DNA of 24,236 nt, from positions 606,540 to 630,775 of the forward strand of contig JAWQFM010000033.1 in assembly GCA_033442325.1 (NCBI GenBank), in the 5' to 3' direction. The notes under the pieces were generated by a model. That model was not told where the DNA came from. It saw only the letters and a list, made by a program, of their open reading frames with translations, and made no database searches. The stretch is from Salpingoeca rosetta (lineage: Eukaryota > Protista > Choanoflagellata). Below, in pieces: positions 4,696 to 22,800 of the stretch. Each line of letters begins with the position of its first letter. Within the stretch, counting starts at the first letter, position 1. The position numbers and the translations under genes are program-made.

Positions 4696-5687
4696 GCTTG
4701 CTCGCAGGTCTGCCTTTGCCAAAAGCACTGCCAACAGGATGGTCCAACGAAGCGGAGATGTGCACCGATATCGCCGAGCACCTTCGCGCCACGGCTGCGC
4801 ACCTCGACCCTGGTGTCACGTTCCCGAGTGAGGTCCCAATCATGACGTACGTTGTGCGGTGCATGTTGTGTCCAGGCGTTGGAGGGGTGGGGAGTGGGTG
4901 TTTGCTGTATCCTTGTTTCCGCTCTCTTGCGTGTCCTGTGATGCTTGTGATGCTGCAAATGCCGGTTTCTTACAGGGAACCTGCCCGTGCTCTTGTCGCG
5001 CTTGCCGCCTTGCGTTGGCCAGGTTCAAGCCAGGCACCCGCCCCAAAACAGACATTGTGATGGTGGACCGTCACACAAACACAATAGCGGCCGTATTTGA
5101 GCTCACGCTAGGCGAGGATGCTGACTCGCTTGGCCAGTTGGCAGCGTACGCGCACCACGCGATTGTGGCGAACGTGCACCGCATTGCAGGCGAGCACGTG
5201 CCTCTGGAGGAGCTGCCCCTGCTCGCTGGGCTGGCGATNNNNNNNNNNNNNNNNNNNNNNNNNNNNNNNNNNNNNNNNNNNNNNNNNNNNNNNNNNNNNN
5301 NNNNNNNNNNNNNNNNNNNNNNNNNNNNNNNNNNNNNNNNNNNNNNNNNNNNNNNNNNNNNNNNNNNNNNNNNNNNNNNNNNNNNNNNNNNNNNNNNNNN
5401 NNNNNNNNNNNNNNNNNNNNNNNNNNNNNNNNNNNNNNNNNNNNNNNNNNNNNNNNNNNNNNNCATGAAGCCCCATGTGCTGCACTTCAACCCCGACAGC
5501 GGCAAAGGTGTGTTGTTTGCTGTTTGCTTGTCTGCGTCTGTATGTGCATGTGTGTGCATGCATGTGTGTGTGCATGCATGTGTGGGTGTGTGCATGTGTG
5601 TGTGCCTGCGCCTGTATGTGTGTGTGTGTGTGTGCATGCATGCGCCTGTCTCTCCGCCCCCCTCCCCTCTCTGCCTCTCTCTGCTTC

Positions 5688-7484: not shown

Positions 7485-8324
7485 ATGATGATGATGAGAC
7501 GCAGGATGATGGTGGTGGCGGTGGTACAACTGCTCGTGTTGATGTGTTGCGGTGTGGCGGCGTCGCATGTGTCTTCTGGTAGGAAGGCGTCCATCTTCTT
7601 TCTGCTCACGGATGACCAAGACGTCGACATGGGCTTTGTGTCCCAGCCCAAGCTCGTCAGCCTGTGGCAGAAGCAAGGCGGTGTGTGTGTGTGTTCGTGC
7701 GTGTGTGTGTGTGTGTGTGCGTGTGTATGAGAGAGTGTGTGTGCGTGTGCATGTGCGTGTGTATGAGAGTGAGTGTGTGTGTGTGTATGAGAGAGAGTGT
7801 GTGCGTGTGCATGTGCGTGTGTATGAGAGAGTGTGTGTGTGTCTGTGTGTGTGTGTGTTTGCAGCTGTAGCTGAGGCTATGTCAAGCTGTATGTCAAGCT
7901 GTATGTCAAGCTGTATTGTGGTGTGTCTGCATGCGTTTGAATATGTATTTCTACTTCATGTCTGTGTACCTATCTGTCCACCCGTGCGCCTGTCCGCTTG
8001 CCACGCACTTGCGCACTGCCGTCCTCCCTTCCTCCCCCCCCCCCCATCCACGGGGCTGCCGGACGTCAAGGCTGGCCCTGCCTCTTTTTCTCTGTGCACA
8101 GTCTGACACACCACTGGCCTGCTCCTGCGTTGCCCTTGCAGCCACATTGGAAGCAGCCTTTGCCAGCACACCTGTGTGTTGTCCTTCACGCGCAGGCATC
8201 CAGACGGGAAGGTACATCCACAACGTCCCCATGACCAACAACTCCATCCCGGGCAATTGTTCCAGCACTGCGTGGCAGCAAGGCGCCGAGAGGCACAACA
8301 TCGGCCACCTCATGAAACAAGCCG

Positions 8325-8414
<90 letters not shown>

Positions 8415-8635
8415 ATGTGTGTATGCAAGAGAGGGATTGCGTTGCCTTGCAGCCACATTGGAAGCAGCCTTTGCCAGCACACCTGTGTGTTGTCCTTCAC
8501 GCGCAGGCATCCAGACGGGAAGGTACATCCACAACGTCCCCATGACCAACAACTCCATCCCGGGCAATTGTTCCAGCACTGCGTGGCAGCAAGGCGCCGA
8601 GAGGCACAACATCGGCCACCTCATGAAACAAGCCG

Positions 8636-8721
<86 letters not shown>

Positions 8722-11007
8722 ATGTGTATTCGAGGGAGGGAGTGCGCGCGCTCCCTCTATCTGTGTATGTGCCTGTCTTTCTGTGTCTCTCTCTGCATGT
8801 GCTTGTCGTTGTTTGTGGTGCTTGCTCCCTGTTCAGTGGCCTCTTGCAGCTGCAGTTGTGTCCTTTCATCGCTGGCACTGCCCCACACGGCACCTCTCAC
8901 TTGCAGGTTACACAACAATGTACACGGGCAAATACTTGAACCAGTACGTGCATCGTGGCACGCGTATCGTTGACACGCGCACGACCGACAGTGTTTCGTT
9001 GCTGCATGTATGATGGATTCACGCACACGAACGCAGCCACGTACATACACGCATTCAAAGATACACATACACACGCATACATACACGCACATACACACGC
9101 ACACTCATACTCACATACACGCACATACATACACATTCACATGCACACGTGCGATTGTCTTGGGTGCAGATACGGTGCACCGAGTGCCGGTGGTGTGCAG
9201 CATGTTCCTCGCGGATGGGACAACTGGCAAGCACGTAAGCTCGTCATGTACGCGCATGCGTGTGCGTGTGTGGTCATGTGCACATGCGTGTACATGCGTG
9301 AACATGCTCGTGTGTGTATGTGTACTCGTGTGTGTATGCATCGCTGTATCGATGTGAAAATGTGTGTGTGTGTGAACGCGCCGTGCATGCTGGTTTCCAG
9401 CCTGGCAGTGGTTATGCTCCCAGTTCATGTACCGCCTTGCTGTCCATGTATGTATGTATGTATGTATGTATGTATGTATGTATGTATGTATGTATGTATG
9501 TATGTATGCATGTATGTATGTATGTGTGTATGTATGTATGTATGTATGTATGTATGTATGTATGTATGTATATATGTATGTATGTCTGTGCAGTTGTCGG
9601 CAACAGCGTGTACTACGACTACGTGATCTCCAACAACGGAACCCCGGAGTCACACGGCAACACGTACCTGCCAAACGTATGTGACACGTCCGTGAGTGGC
9701 GCGCGTGCTTGTGAACTTGTGCGTGCGTATGCACTTGTACGTGCGTGTGTGTGCACTTGAACGTGCGTGCGTGTGCGTGTGTGTATGTGTTTGTGTGTGT
9801 GCGTGAGTGTTGTCATTTTGCTTTGTCTGTAAGCCTACTGCTGTTGCTCCACCTGGACACGCCGCCACGCTGCGTGCTCCTTGATCCTATGCGTCACACC
9901 ACGCACACCACCACCACCACCACTCCCCGCACACCGCTGGCATGCCGTGGCAGCTGCTGTTGGACAAGACATCCGATTTCCTGCGGACACTGGAAGGGAC
10001 TGATGACCCCTTCTTCATCATGGTTGGCACTCCGTCATGCCACGACCCCACAGAGCCTGCACCAGAATATGCGCACCTCCTGCCAAACGCAACTGCCCCG
10101 CGCCCGCCAAACTACGGTCAGCAGCTGCTGTGCCTTTGTGTCTCTGTGTATGTGTGTGTGTTTCTGTGCATATGTGTGTGTGTATGCATGTTTCTGTGTA
10201 TATGTGTGTTTCTGTGCATATGTGTGTATTTGTGTGCGTGTAGTTGTGTTTCTGTTTCTGTTTCTGTTTCTGTGTGTTTCTGTTTGTGTGTGTGTGTGTG
10301 TTCGTCCGTGTGCTCCGTTGAAAGGACTGTCTCGCACTGCGCCCCCTGTTGCTGCTTGCAGGCAAGGCGTTTCGAGACAAGCACTGGTTTGTTGCAAAGC
10401 AAGGAGAGGTCGCAGGTTTTGGATCAGGTAGACAGACATGGCACATGCAATTGCGTTTATTGCCAGACACACGCACTCACACGTGCCACACGTTCACTCA
10501 CACGCACTCACTCACTCACTCACTCACTCACACGCACACACTCACTCACTCACTCACTCACTCACTCACCTTCGACGTGTGTTCTGGCACGACGCGCGCT
10601 GCTTTTGCATGTTGATTGCGCCTGTCATACGGCAAAGGGTATGCGCCAATCGAGGAGAAGTACAATGATCTGCAGTACCGCCGACGCGCCCTCACGCTCA
10701 TGACTGTTGATGACATCGTCGCAAACGTCACAGCGTACGCCAATGCCTCGTGCACTCGTGGCCTAAGTTGTTTATGTTGTTTAAGTTGTTGTTGTTGGTT
10801 TTAAGTTGTTGTTTAAGTTGTTGGTTGTAAGTTGTTGTAAGTTGTTGTTGTTGTTGTTGTTGTTTCAGTAGTTGTTGTTGTTTTAGTTGTTGTTGTTGTT
10901 GTTGTTGTTTCAGTAGTTGTTGTTGTTTAAGTTGTTGTTGTTGTTTATGTTGTTGTTGTTGTTTTAAGTTGTTGTTGTTGTTTAAGTTGTTGTTGTTGTT
11001 GTTTAAG

Positions 11008-17903: not shown

Positions 17904-19812
17904 TCAGTCGTACAGCGGGATCTCCTTGATGATGTTCTTGATGCGGCCCAGCAAATCACACGACTGCGGGAGCTGCGAGCTCATCCCGACCAGCACCAAA
18001 TGACCCTGCTGCTTCTCCTCCTTCTCCTGCTCCCCCTTCCACTGCTGCTGCTGCCCCTGTTGCTGCTGCTGCTGCTGCTGCTCGAGCTGTTTCAACGCGG
18101 CCAGCATGGCGTCCTTGGTTGCCCTGTGTGCCCTCTGCGGTGCACTCTTGTAGAGCGCAGACCGGAGAGTGCACACGTAAAGCAGGGCGATCCAGTCATC
18201 CTCGATGTGGCGTTTCACTCGCTCGTCACCAGCTGCACGGATGTGTGCTGACCGCTCAGGCAGGTCCGTACGAAGAGCAACCTCAGCCGGCTTGAGTTTG
18301 GCCGCCTCCATGACATCGGCGTCGCAGCCAGCCAGTTCGAAGTCGATAAGAGAGGCTTTGTCGCCGCTCACGACCACGTTGGCACAGCGAATGTCATGGT
18401 GAACGAGACCAGCCGCTGACAGGAGAAACAAGCTGTTGCAGAGCTGCGCGACGTGCTGTTCGTGAATGTGAGCGCGGGTCGACCCGAGGTGGGGCACCGC
18501 AATCATCTGCGTGCCATTGCCACTGCCACTGCCACTGCTGCTGCTGGTGGTGTTGGTGGTGCTGCTCTTGCTGTTGGTGGCGGGGATGCGACTGCAAGCG
18601 CGTTGCCCGTTGACATACTTCCACATGTTTTCAATCTCTTCAGCACGCAAGTCGCCAGCACGGTGCCCAGTCTTGATGAACTTGCACACGTATCCGCTTC
18701 CTTTGTTGGCGACGGAACTGAGCACTTTCGGTGCCTCTGCTGACAGCACAGCGATAAGCACAACCAGCATCATGTGAATCACACCACACACGAGCACAGG
18801 CACGGGCGCAATGGTGCATACAACGCTGCATAGCGACCGCCTTTCAACCACACACAACCACACACAAACAAAAACAGAAGCAGAGAGGCAGAGAGGGAGA
18901 GAGAGGAGAGGATCGTGCACACGCACATATGCATACACGCACACATGCATACGCACACATGCACATACAGACGCAGACAAGCAAACAGCAAACAACACAC
19001 CTTTGCCGCTGTCGGGGTTGAAGTGCAGCACATGGGGCTTCATGACATTCAACGCAAAGTCGCTGCCATGCTCAATGTTCTGCTTGATGGCGTGGGCGTA
19101 CTTTGCGTGGAGGAAGTCCGCAAAGCAGGAAATGGCCATAGCAGCCTGCCCAATGTTCGTCATCGGAATGGAGATGATGTTGTGGGCGACCAGCTTCACG
19201 ACTCCACCGGCGTTGGCCACCATAAACTCAACAACGGTGGTCTGCACCGGGCTGACACGCAGCCCAAACATCGCCAGCCCAGCGAGCAGGGGCAGCTCCT
19301 CCAGAGGCACGTGCTCGCCTGCAATGCGGTGCACGTTCGCCACAATCGCGTGGTGTGCGTACGCTGCCAACTGGCCAAGCGAGTCAGCATCCTCGCCTAG
19401 CGTGAGCTCAAACACGGCCACTTTTGTGTTTGTGCGACCATCCACCATCACAATGTCTGTTTTGGGGCGGGTGCCTGGCTTGAACCTGGCCAACGCAAGG
19501 CGGCAAGCGCGACAAGAGCACGGGCACGTTCCCTGTAAGAAGTTGGCATTCGCAGCACCACAAGCAGCACAGGGCACGCAAGAGAGCGGGAACAAGGATA
19601 CAGCAAACACCCACTCCCCACCCCTCCAACGCCTGGACACAACATGCACCGCACAACGTACGTCATGATTGGGACCTCACTCGGGAACGCGACACCAGGG
19701 TCGAGGTGCGCAGCCGTGGCGCGAAGGTGCTCGGCGATATCGGTGCACATCTCCGCTTCGTTGGACCATCCTGTTGGCAGTGCTTTTGGCAAAGGCAGAC
19801 CTGCGAGCAAGC

Positions 19813-19857
<45 letters not shown>

Positions 19858-22800
19858 GTGTGTGTGTGTATAGGCAGGGGTGAGATGTAAGCGTGCACGC
19901 ATTGCACAATGGTGTCACAATCACATCTCACATCACAACCCTTCATGTGCGCTTGCGCACACATCGGCAATACACGACCAAACACCACATGATGATGACG
20001 ACGTTGACAAACGCTCCAAGGCCAAGTACACGTGTCTGCACGTGCACCTAAAACTGAAAGCAGTGCAAACACAGGCAACACTAGTCTTCGCCACGTCCTT
20101 ACCTTGTCGCAGGCCAAGCGTCACTTGGCGCCCCCTGGGGCGGGGCCCACGGCTGCTGGACACCTCCAGCACTGGTATTTCGTGAATCTTTGCAATCACT
20201 GCTTGCGGCGTGATGTCATCAGCCTTCAGCTCAAACTGGAAACGCGAAAACAAGCACGCATGCACACACGCACACATGCACATACACACGAGTGTGTTGA
20301 CACAAAGGTGTGCGGGACGAGCGGTTGATGAGAGGCATGGGGAGAAGTGCACATATGGCGGCACGTCGTTTAGTGATGGGTGGTGATGATAATGCCACCA
20401 AGCACATGACACACACACACACACACACACACAAGCACACAGTCGCACTCATATATTCTCGCTCGCACAAACACACGCACATGCACGTTTACAGAAATGA
20501 GCCCAGCACTACTGTTCCACCAGCACCGCCCGCACACACAGCGCAGCGGCGACGGATGTCATTGCATTGCAGCACCTGTTTTGCGAGTGGCTCTCGCCAT
20601 ATGTCGGTGAAGAACTGGGCATTGTCCGGCCAGTAGACGAGATACGGGTTCTTCTCGGGCTTGGTGATGCTGCTGGGTGGCGTCGTGAAGAAGAATTCTG
20701 CACGCACACACACACACACACAGCAGTGCAATCAGCGCGCATGAGGGGCGGAGAGGTGTCAAAACAAGCGTGAATGTGTCGCATGCGTGACTATGGTGGT
20801 GGAGGCTACCAATGCAAATGCCAACGACAGTAACTGTGACACAGTGACAAAGGCAGCGATAATTACAGTGGCAGTGGCAGTGGCAGTGACAACGACGATA
20901 CAAGCAAACGTGTTGTGCGCTGTGTGACATCAACGCAAAACGTCATGCACATACAAACACACGCGCAAACAAGTGCACACATGTCCGTGTGTCATCAAGA
21001 CAACCAAAACAAGCAGGGCCGTCTTCACCACCACATCCGCACGAAAACACACAAAGAGGTGGATGACAGCATACCGTCTCTGATCTCGGCAGGTGAGCTG
21101 ATCTTCTTCTCCGCAACGCGCTTCTCGATATCTTGGAGAGCAGATAAAGTGATAGTGGCCAGTCGGGGCGGGCCAGCAGCGGGCACAAGGCCGGCCTCCC
21201 ACGCTGTCGCCAGGGCGTCGTCCACCACCTGTGACACCACAGTCCACAGGTGCTCGGCACTTGTGGTGTGTGGCAGCGGCTCACCTGCCACCTGCAGCAA
21301 TGTCGTCAACGCGCGCACCCACACTTTGTGTTGCTGTTGCTGCCACTTCTTCCTCCATTCTTCTTCATCCCTCCTCCTCTCTTCTTCTTCTCTCATCCGT
21401 TTTTCTTCTTCCCCTGTGCTCTCGTCTTCATCCCTCATCCTCTTTTCTTCTTCCCTCATCCTTTCTTCTTCTTCCCTCACCCTCTCTTCTTCATCCCTCA
21501 CCCTCTCCTCTTCATCCCTCACCTTCTCCTCTTCATCCCTCATCCTTTCTTCTTCATTCTCCTTGATGATTTCCTCCATTCGTCTGCGCAGCTTATCACG
21601 CTGCACCAGCAGCGTGGCAAGCTGTTCCTCCAACTGAGTCACCTTCCTCTCTGCCGCTGTAATTGCCTGTTGGTCGGTCGGCAATGCCACACCAGCTTCG
21701 GCCTGTGCTTGCGTGAGCTCATTTCTCTTGTCCCCGATCCGCTGTGCATTCACGTTGCTCGCCTCCTGGATGCGTTGCTGTCTGTCGTGTCTGTCGCGCA
21801 TGCGTTGCTGCCTGTCGCGCATGCGTTGCTGCCTGTCGCGCATGCGTTGCTGCCTGTGCTGTTGCTGCTTCACTCGCTCAGCATCGCGCTTCACCCTCTC
21901 CACCTCCGCCATCATCCTCTCCATCTGCTCCCGCGCAAGAGCCGCCCAGACCTTGTCATGCTCCGCCTGTGCAGCCGCAAGCTGTTGTTGTGCGGCCCGC
22001 ACACCCTCTTCCTTCTCCTCCAATACGTGCTGTAATCTGTCAATCATTGAGCTGCACTCATCCAGGGTCCATCTTTCCAGCAGATAGAGCATGTCGTCCA
22101 TCCTGCTGCTGCTGCTGTTGCCGCTGCTGCCTTGCTGCTGCGCGCATTCTTCTTGCAACTGCGTGATGGTCGCAAACCGCGCGGCTGCCTCCGTTATGAT
22201 GGACGCCTGTGCATAACGGTGGTGTTGTGAGGGTGGGGTAAGAGGTGATACCAGTCTGTGGCGGGGGGTGTGAGGGGGTGGGGGATTCGGTTGCTGCATC
22301 GCAAGGCAGTGCTGTGTCAATGTGCTTTTGTGCATGCGCAATTGCAGAACCTTGGAGGCCACGCGGGTTTCAGTTCGCTTCAAGTCTCTCTGAAAAGAAA
22401 AGACGGGGGTGGATATTATGCACGAGAACATGAGGTGGGTGCGGGTATGAGCAAGATCGTGGCGGAAGCCGAAATCACAGCACGTGTTGTGGTGATTGCA
22501 CCGTGGTGGTGGTAGTGGTGGTGGTTGCACTGTGGTGATGGTTGGTGGCTGCGGTTGTTGTGGTGGTTGTTGCTGTCTGTGGTGACTGTGGTCGGTGGTT
22601 GACGTACCACGCTGTTGCGTGAAGCCTGCTGGTGTCGACAGAACGGCGTTGTGGTGGTTGAAAGGGGTTGGGCAGAGAGTGTGGGTGAGCACAGAGGGTG
22701 AATGCAAACATCACACACACACACACACACAAGCAACCGTATAGCAGCGGAGCAATGATAACGGCGCTGTGATGGTGGTTGCACTGTGACGGCGAAGATA

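Follow-up and report, generated by a model that had tools for sequence, protein, structure and literature searches.

The window examined in this work, a stretch of 24,236 nucleotides (nt) from the choanoflagellate Salpingoeca rosetta (G000:C33:606540-630775, within a searched genome of 55.4 Mb in 68 contigs), contains on its minus strand one intact gene of nine exons that encodes a protein of 878 amino acids (aa), and positions 17904-20697 comprise the 3' two-thirds of this gene. Its product is best explained as a single polypeptide that begins with a coiled coil at the N-terminus and continues with a middle domain of about 300 aa, the core of which is probably of the PD-(D/E)xK type (YhcG- or PDDEXK_3-like), and with a reduced kinase of the eukaryotic type in which all of the catalytic residues are present, and we favour this explanation with moderate confidence. 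The gene is already annotated publicly as a kinase: a word search with the 581-aa open reading frame (ORF) at 17904-19649 has retrieved the protein P0001 ("serine/threonine protein kinase [Salpingoeca rosetta]", 878 aa), which is 100% identical to it. The nine exons have been placed by exact mapping of P0001, with GT-AG at each of the eight introns, and the minus strand displays here a succession of short exons with GT...AG borders that are separated by introns rich in GT microsatellites. The parts of the gene are as follows:

Exon 1: 22431-22351, minus strand, exact mapping of P0001
Exon 2: 22206-21874, minus strand, exact mapping of P0001
Exon 3: 21777-21600, minus strand, exact mapping of P0001
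Exon 4: 21404-21075, minus strand, exact mapping of P0001
Exons 1-4 together: 21075-22431, minus strand, aa 1-307, N-terminal coiled coil and helical linker
Exon 5: 20576-20697, minus strand, aa 308-348, in which the middle domain begins
Exon 6: 20103-20235, minus strand, aa 349-393
Exon 7: 19662-19800, minus strand, aa 394-439, with a predicted helix at 407-422 (NEAEMCTDIAEHL) and a short strand IMT, the proposed alpha1 and beta1 of a nuclease-type core (low-confidence model)
Exon 8: 19001-19485, minus strand, aa 440-600, core of the nuclease-like domain, with further strands and helices after Q477...Y481
Intron between exons 8 and 9 (the D/E intron): 18740-19000, minus strand, 261 nt, GT-rich, in frame and free of stop codons
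Exon 9: 18739-17907, with the stop codon at 17906-17904, minus strand, aa 601-878, reduced kinase, serine/threonine-rich insert, polyglutamine stretch and short conserved tail

Exons 5-9 and the stop codon encode residues 308-878 of P0001. The initial annotation of this DNA, which was made from the sequence alone, had proposed that five exons are spliced into one continuous reading frame; these exons are the same as those of P0001, their introns are of the GT-AG type, and all of the strings that were quoted from the translation are present in the protein. The view that they belong to one gene, and not to several, likewise agrees with the public model, and an environmental relative (L010) that is about 40% identical agrees with it in both the position and the phase of the D/E intron. 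The spliced length of 983 aa that was given at that time is too long, the public model having 878 aa, and most of the discrepancy is due to the splicing out of two in-frame stretches of 96 and 195 nt. The public model places these two introns at 21778-21873 (96 nt) and 21405-21599 (195 nt) on the minus strand, inside a 560-aa coiled-coil ORF; both of their lengths are multiples of three, and the frame would be kept if they were retained. Because the 261-nt D/E intron is also in frame and free of stop codons, the list of ORFs shows a single ORF of 581 aa in its place. The length and the microsatellites of this intron vary between paralogues and the exons on both sides stay conserved. In the coiled coil, residues 12-51, 61-168 and 174-236 are predicted to be long helices, and these form the only part of the AlphaFold model of the full protein in which the predicted local distance difference test score (pLDDT) is 70 or above.

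The best-conserved feature of the middle domain across the different subfamilies of this protein family is a series of motifs consisting of [RK]-x-D-h-h-h, 8-17 residues, h-h-h-E-h-K-[TSR]-x-G, 8-10 residues, and Q-[LV]-x-x-Y-A-x-H-A. This series is seen in at least 20 paralogues from S. rosetta and in one environmental relative, in subfamilies that are otherwise only about 20% identical to each other, and in some of these subfamilies the ExK site is split by an intron. The corresponding residues of the gene studied here are found in exon 8:

D449: 19457-19455, minus strand, nuclease-like motif
E465-L-T467: 19409-19401, minus strand, ExK site with the lysine replaced by threonine
Q477...Y481: 19373-19359, minus strand, QxxxY motif

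The "ExK" that had been described for this gene thus reads E-L-T. Of the seven close copies, five have the sequence F-E-L-T, among them this gene, and F-E-L-K is confined to P0003 and P0006; the lysine is also present in the environmental relative L010 and in distant paralogues, which suggests that the ancestor of the family had the D...(D/E)xK triad that this copy lacks. In view of the E-L-T in place of ExK, the nuclease of this copy is probably inactive, as judged from its sequence. The lysine/threonine polymorphism at the catalytic position among near-identical paralogues provides a ready-made natural comparison.

Secondary structure taken from the AlphaFold models (pLDDT of 39 and 44) consists of a helix at 407-422, strands at 437-439, 447-454 and 460-467, and a helix at 475-493, and this order of helix, three strands and helix agrees with the alpha-beta-beta-beta-alpha-beta core of PD-(D/E)xK enzymes. 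Further evidence comes from a comparison by hhalign of our alignment of the core (A7) with alignments of PD-(D/E)xK families built from bacterial genomes. The A7 alignment matches PDDEXK_3 with P = 0.016, with the D, E, K, Q and Y residues in register, and YhcG_C with P = 0.047, again in register and over 64 columns that include the next two strands; for both families combined P = 0.024. These were the sole alignments found with the two families, and they pair D with D, ExK with ELK, QxxxY with QxxxY, and the next strand with G-L-L. Among the controls, the close pair YhcG_C and PDDEXK_3 gives P = 6e-6, A7 against the kinase alignment gives P = 0.71, and the true pair YhcG_C and PDDEXK_1 reaches only P = 0.18, on account of which this test must be regarded as under-powered. 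YhcG_C (PF06250) and PDDEXK_3 (PF13366) share with the S. rosetta domain the succession of a D-strand, about 15 residues, hhhE-h-K, about 10 residues, G-Q-h-x-x-Y and a G-h-h-h strand. The S. rosetta domain differs from them in its larger size (about 300 aa), its eukaryotic origin, the introns that divide it and its fusion to a kinase, and the statistics that connect it to them are weak (P = 0.016-0.047, hhalign probability 1-3%).

A further indication has been obtained from the ESM Atlas, where all structural neighbours of the model of aa 394-600, with template modelling (TM) scores of 0.58-0.66, belong to clusters from fungi. The neighbouring domains are uncharacterised, and their clusters include Pkinase_fungal proteins of 742-844 aa, DUF7924 proteins, and one cluster in which 17% of the members carry a Crinkler header.

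A number of observations weigh against a nuclease fold and must be set beside this evidence. Both AlphaFold2 models are of low confidence, viz. the one of the full protein together with 7 paralogues (pLDDT 39) and the one of exon 8 together with the 40%-identical relative (pLDDT 44). The combination of AlphaFold and Foldseek that the initial annotation had named as a check has consequently yielded two models that are unusable, and Foldseek on the second of them returned only noise. No nuclease match for the middle domain was found in Pfam, NCBIfam or PADLOC, and no nuclease was found in a PDB sequence search or in two PDB profile searches with this domain. The hhalign probabilities amount merely to 1-3%, the comparison of A7 with PDDEXK_1 (P = 0.47) is not in register, and the close subfamily when used alone gives no hhalign signal. 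The Atlas neighbours come from predicted models whose local confidence is not known, with a pLDDT of 0.54 for the whole protein, and they constitute a lead only. Lastly, the gene itself is without a complete catalytic D...(D/E)xK triad, as D449 and E465 are present and T467 stands at the position of the lysine.

A rival explanation is that the middle domain does not have a nuclease fold and serves an ordinary signalling kinase as a lineage-specific domain for regulation or for the binding of substrate, the likeness to the D/ExK/QxxxY series being fortuitous. The lack of a significant match to any nuclease family by hidden Markov model (HMM) or PDB profile, hhalign probabilities that do not exceed 3%, the unusable AlphaFold models, the missing lysine in five of seven close copies, and a public annotation that names a kinase only are all in accordance with such an explanation. 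However, it leaves unexplained why the motif residues and their spacing should be the most conserved feature across subfamilies of about 20% identity, why all five residues should fall in register with two nuclease families in an hhalign comparison that beats a true-positive control, and why the predicted order of secondary structure elements should fit the PD-(D/E)xK fold. We consider a chance resemblance rather unlikely, and it is fairly probable that the core of the middle domain has the PD-(D/E)xK restriction-endonuclease fold. Of the PD-(D/E)xK core that was initially recognised in this gene, the conserved motifs, the order of secondary structure, the weak in-register alignments and the Atlas look-alikes speak in its favour; the catalytic lysine is a threonine, and the fold is suggestive only.

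The middle domain is followed by a kinase, as the initial annotation had stated, and the motifs on which that statement was based are all found in exon 9:

K620 of VCK: 18683-18681, minus strand, kinase motif
HHDIRCAN (D716, N721): 18401-18378, minus strand, kinase motif
D733 of IDFE: 18344-18342, minus strand, kinase motif
DDW (D782-W783): 18200-18192, minus strand, kinase motif

Exon 9 also contains an acidic alphaC-like stretch (E634/E637) and LPER (P761-E762), so that the catalytic residues of a kinase are all retained, viz. the beta3 lysine K620, the alphaC glutamate E634/E637, D716 with N721, and D733. In a superfamily alignment of the gene with its distant paralogues and the environmental relative (A5), residues N120, D132, E161-R162 and D181 (A5 numbering), which correspond to the Asn, the Asp, the E-R and the D of DxW, do not vary between the subfamilies. 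The A5 profile, when compared with the PDB, matches MAPK11 with E = 3.4e-8; in all, 701 distinct kinase sequences are matched at E <= 0.1, with MAP kinases and PknB as the best of them. The gene alone gives sub-threshold matches at the catalytic loop to APH, RIO, Bud32, Pkinase and PD-T4-6 in the Pfam, NCBIfam and PADLOC scans (for Pfam APH, 16.9-17.7 bits against a cut-off of 23.2), and one distant paralogue passes the APH cut-off with 27.1 bits. On sequence comparison, a kinase fold is thus established, since the A5 profile matches solved protein kinases and a distant paralogue passes APH. The short N-lobe is shared with the minimal kinases of the Bud32, RIO and APH types, and the best family-scan matches of the gene to these kinases are located at the catalytic loop. 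Unlike them, however, the kinase of this gene keeps an APE-like P-E-R and a D-x-W, and these motifs, together with best matches to MAP kinases and PknB, indicate a reduced kinase of the eukaryotic type and not one of the Bud32/RIO type.

This gene belongs to a subfamily of seven close copies, five of which are located on contig C33 in a stretch of 60 kb and the others on C23 and C9. The word search with the 581-aa ORF retrieved seven proteins, all of them from S. rosetta, and an exhaustive search of 1.84 billion representatives found outside this species only P0008 and P0009, two ORFs of one contig. The sole relative outside S. rosetta is L010 (ENA ERZ27265955, contig k141_123599, 1761 bp), a metagenomic sequence from an unknown eukaryote, which shares about 40% identity with exons 8 and 9 and reads VDIVM ... 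FEVK ... GQLSMY, with the Asp, Glu, Lys, Gln and Tyr all kept; the contig stops just upstream of its homologue of exon 8. A scan of JGI metagenome contigs has yielded no further relatives, and neither have two profile word searches, one of which missed even P0009 and is hence uninformative.

A search of the genome with a weakly matching paralogue has revealed at least 13 distant paralogues that contain a kinase of the form HxD[VI]RxxN ... IDF ... ER ... D[WF]:

Distant paralogues L038-L050: contigs C7, C32, C16, C19, C12, C28, C5, C8, C24, C17 and C15, about five subfamilies

Their kinase signatures include HGDVRNEN, HADVRKEN, HCDIRSHN, HTDVRCEN and HGDVRNAN, and in each of them a D...E-[FL]-K...Q[LV]xEYAxHA domain is located upstream, with an intron between the E and the K in several. 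The HMM profile of exon 8 does not reach these genes in the genome, and their kinship was recognised through the kinase and then by alignment of the motifs. In one distant paralogue (on C7) the motif is decayed, and in another (L042, G000:C12:1576800-1584600) a long run of N breaks the nuclease-like exon region. As judged from these shared motifs, the genes form a lineage-specific superfamily of at least 20 members, which is characterised by a dyad of a nuclease-like domain and an HxD[VI]RxxN kinase and of which the seven close copies represent one branch.

Among the close copies, pairwise ratios of non-synonymous to synonymous substitution (dN/dS) are about 0.44 for exon 8 and about 0.51 for exon 9, with dS of 0.05-0.15, rising up to 0.35 against the copy on C9, and these values indicate a recent duplication under relaxed purifying selection. 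Exon 5 shows 0-3 differences per 117 nt among all seven paralogues (20576-20697 and the same exon in L031-L037), and exon 6 exists in two sequence cassettes, such that any two paralogues differ at either 0-4 or 25-28 positions per 132 nt; the pattern in which the cassettes are shared cuts across the other exons. Gene conversion among the copies is suggested by this mosaic pattern of exons 5 and 6. 

The same array raises the question of whether the gene is a decaying or mis-annotated pseudogene copy in which not all of the exons are used. The loss of the ExK lysine, a dN/dS of about 0.45-0.5, and the irregular gene models of the sister copies P0004, P0006 and P0007 would fit such a history. 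We consider it very improbable, however, as all nine exons are open and have canonical splice sites, the catalytic residues of the kinase are intact, dN/dS is clearly below 1, and the irregular model of P0007 is explained by a gap in the assembly. This last copy is present in the same window:

Paralogue P0007: 1444-7120, plus strand, same subfamily, convergent with the gene studied

A run of N at about 5239-5463 (plus strand) interrupts exon 8 of P0007, and the public model reads around it into intron sequence; the apparent truncation of the middle domain is thus a gap of assembly or masking and not a deletion. Between the two convergent paralogues there is a sulfatase gene of several exons, whose ORFs at 7900-10700 on the plus strand exceed the cut-off of Pfam Sulfatase (E = 3e-6 and 7e-6), and the copies of the family are interspersed with ordinary genes.

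The initial annotation had compared this gene to the Crinkler/RHS (CR) effectors, and the architecture on which the comparison was based, viz. a nuclease-type domain followed directly by a kinase of the eukaryotic type, as in the restriction endonuclease and kinase of CRN8-type proteins, is supported by our analyses. This order is described for about one-sixth of CR C-termini in a passage of PMC5289972 that cites Zhang et al. 2016. Both groups also consist of lineage-specific amplified families with a variable N-terminal module. The gene differs from the CR proteins in lacking the ubiquitin-like header and the LFLAK and HVLV motifs, in giving no detectable sequence match to them and no sign of secretion, in possessing a long N-terminal coiled coil, in having lost the catalytic lysine in this copy, and in residing in a free-living choanoflagellate. 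The absence of the header, which had already been noticed, is borne out by the larger set: neither LFLAK nor HVLV occurs in any of the seven paralogues, and the best match of the Crinkler header PF20147 in the genome (E = 0.1) is at an unrelated locus. Pkinase_fungal (PF17667) does not match any of the seven paralogues at E <= 10, its genome scan having found only other kinases, and PF25545 and PF20713 (scans for DUF7924 and DUF6826) have no match at these genes in the genome. Among the papers searched, none makes a relevant link between Salpingoeca and Crinklers.

The resemblance to the FunK1 kinases (PF17667) is of a similar nature. Predicted structures of 742-844 aa from Zoopagomycota align with aa 394-600 (TM 0.63-0.66 by query), from which a shared build of an N-terminal domain and a kinase seems likely, and one distant S. 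rosetta paralogue has a weak match to PF17667 (E = 0.002, 17.3 bits against a cut-off of 24.1). On the other hand, PF17667 does not match the gene itself, the likeness is between predicted models only, and the kinase signature of the gene is HxD[IV]RxxN.

It could be argued from these similarities that the protein is a true Crinkler/CR effector, a secreted or translocated toxin that is derived from the CR nuclease-kinase modules and has exchanged its header for a coiled coil. The order of domains that is found in about one-sixth of CR C-termini (as given in the passage cited above), Atlas neighbours that include a cluster with a Crinkler header and FunK1-type kinases, and the amplified and mosaic character of the family are in keeping with this proposal. 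Against it stand the missing header motifs and header match, the failure of PF17667, PF25545 and PF20713 to match these genes, N-termini that (by eye only) are not hydrophobic and do not resemble signal peptides, the life of the organism as a free-living bacterivore, and the lack of oomycete or fungal relatives in sequence searches, and we hold the proposal to be improbable. Since no Crinkler header has been found in the gene or in the genome, the gene is, by its architecture, an analogue of the CR/FunK1 nuclease-kinase dyad and not a shown member of it, and the CR membership that was initially put forward is not supported: the agreement with the CR families is confined to the architecture and the Atlas look-alikes, and there is no header, no match at the level of sequence and nothing that points to secretion. 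The protein is more likely to act inside its own cell than as a secreted toxin.

Under the explanation that we favour, that of a coiled coil, a probable PD-(D/E)xK domain and a reduced kinase in one polypeptide, the protein is probably intracellular, the coiled coil may serve to gather copies of it together, and the kinase would be the active enzyme. The nuclease-type domain may bind or cut nucleic acid in those copies that bear the lysine, and the E-L-T domain of this copy, probably catalytically dead, may act as a binding or regulatory module. The role of a conflict or immunity effector, which formed part of the initial interpretation, is an inference from the dynamics of the family, and genetic conflict or defence would be a plausible but unproven function. 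The dN/dS values of about 0.44-0.51 indicate relaxed constraint and provide no evidence of positive selection.

A wider and more tentative proposal, which at present we regard as unlikely, is that choanoflagellates, the nearest unicellular relatives of the animals, may have expanded a family of nuclease-kinase proteins of their own that act within the cell in conflict or immunity and are truly homologous to the Crinkler and FunK1 modules, in which oligomerisation by a coiled coil would replace the delivery header and the copies would alternate between a live ExK and a dead ExT. Should the middle domain prove to be no nuclease, these genes are simply kinases of a family specific to this lineage, to which an orphan domain is attached. 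If it is one, S. rosetta has a family of about 20 or more nuclease-kinase fusions that are almost private to the species and that resemble in their build the effectors known from oomycetes and fungi. In that case the range of this architecture would include the sister group of the animals, and S. rosetta would offer a tractable model organism in which the roles of such dyads within their own cell (viz. defence, recognition of self and non-self, or selfish behaviour) could be studied.

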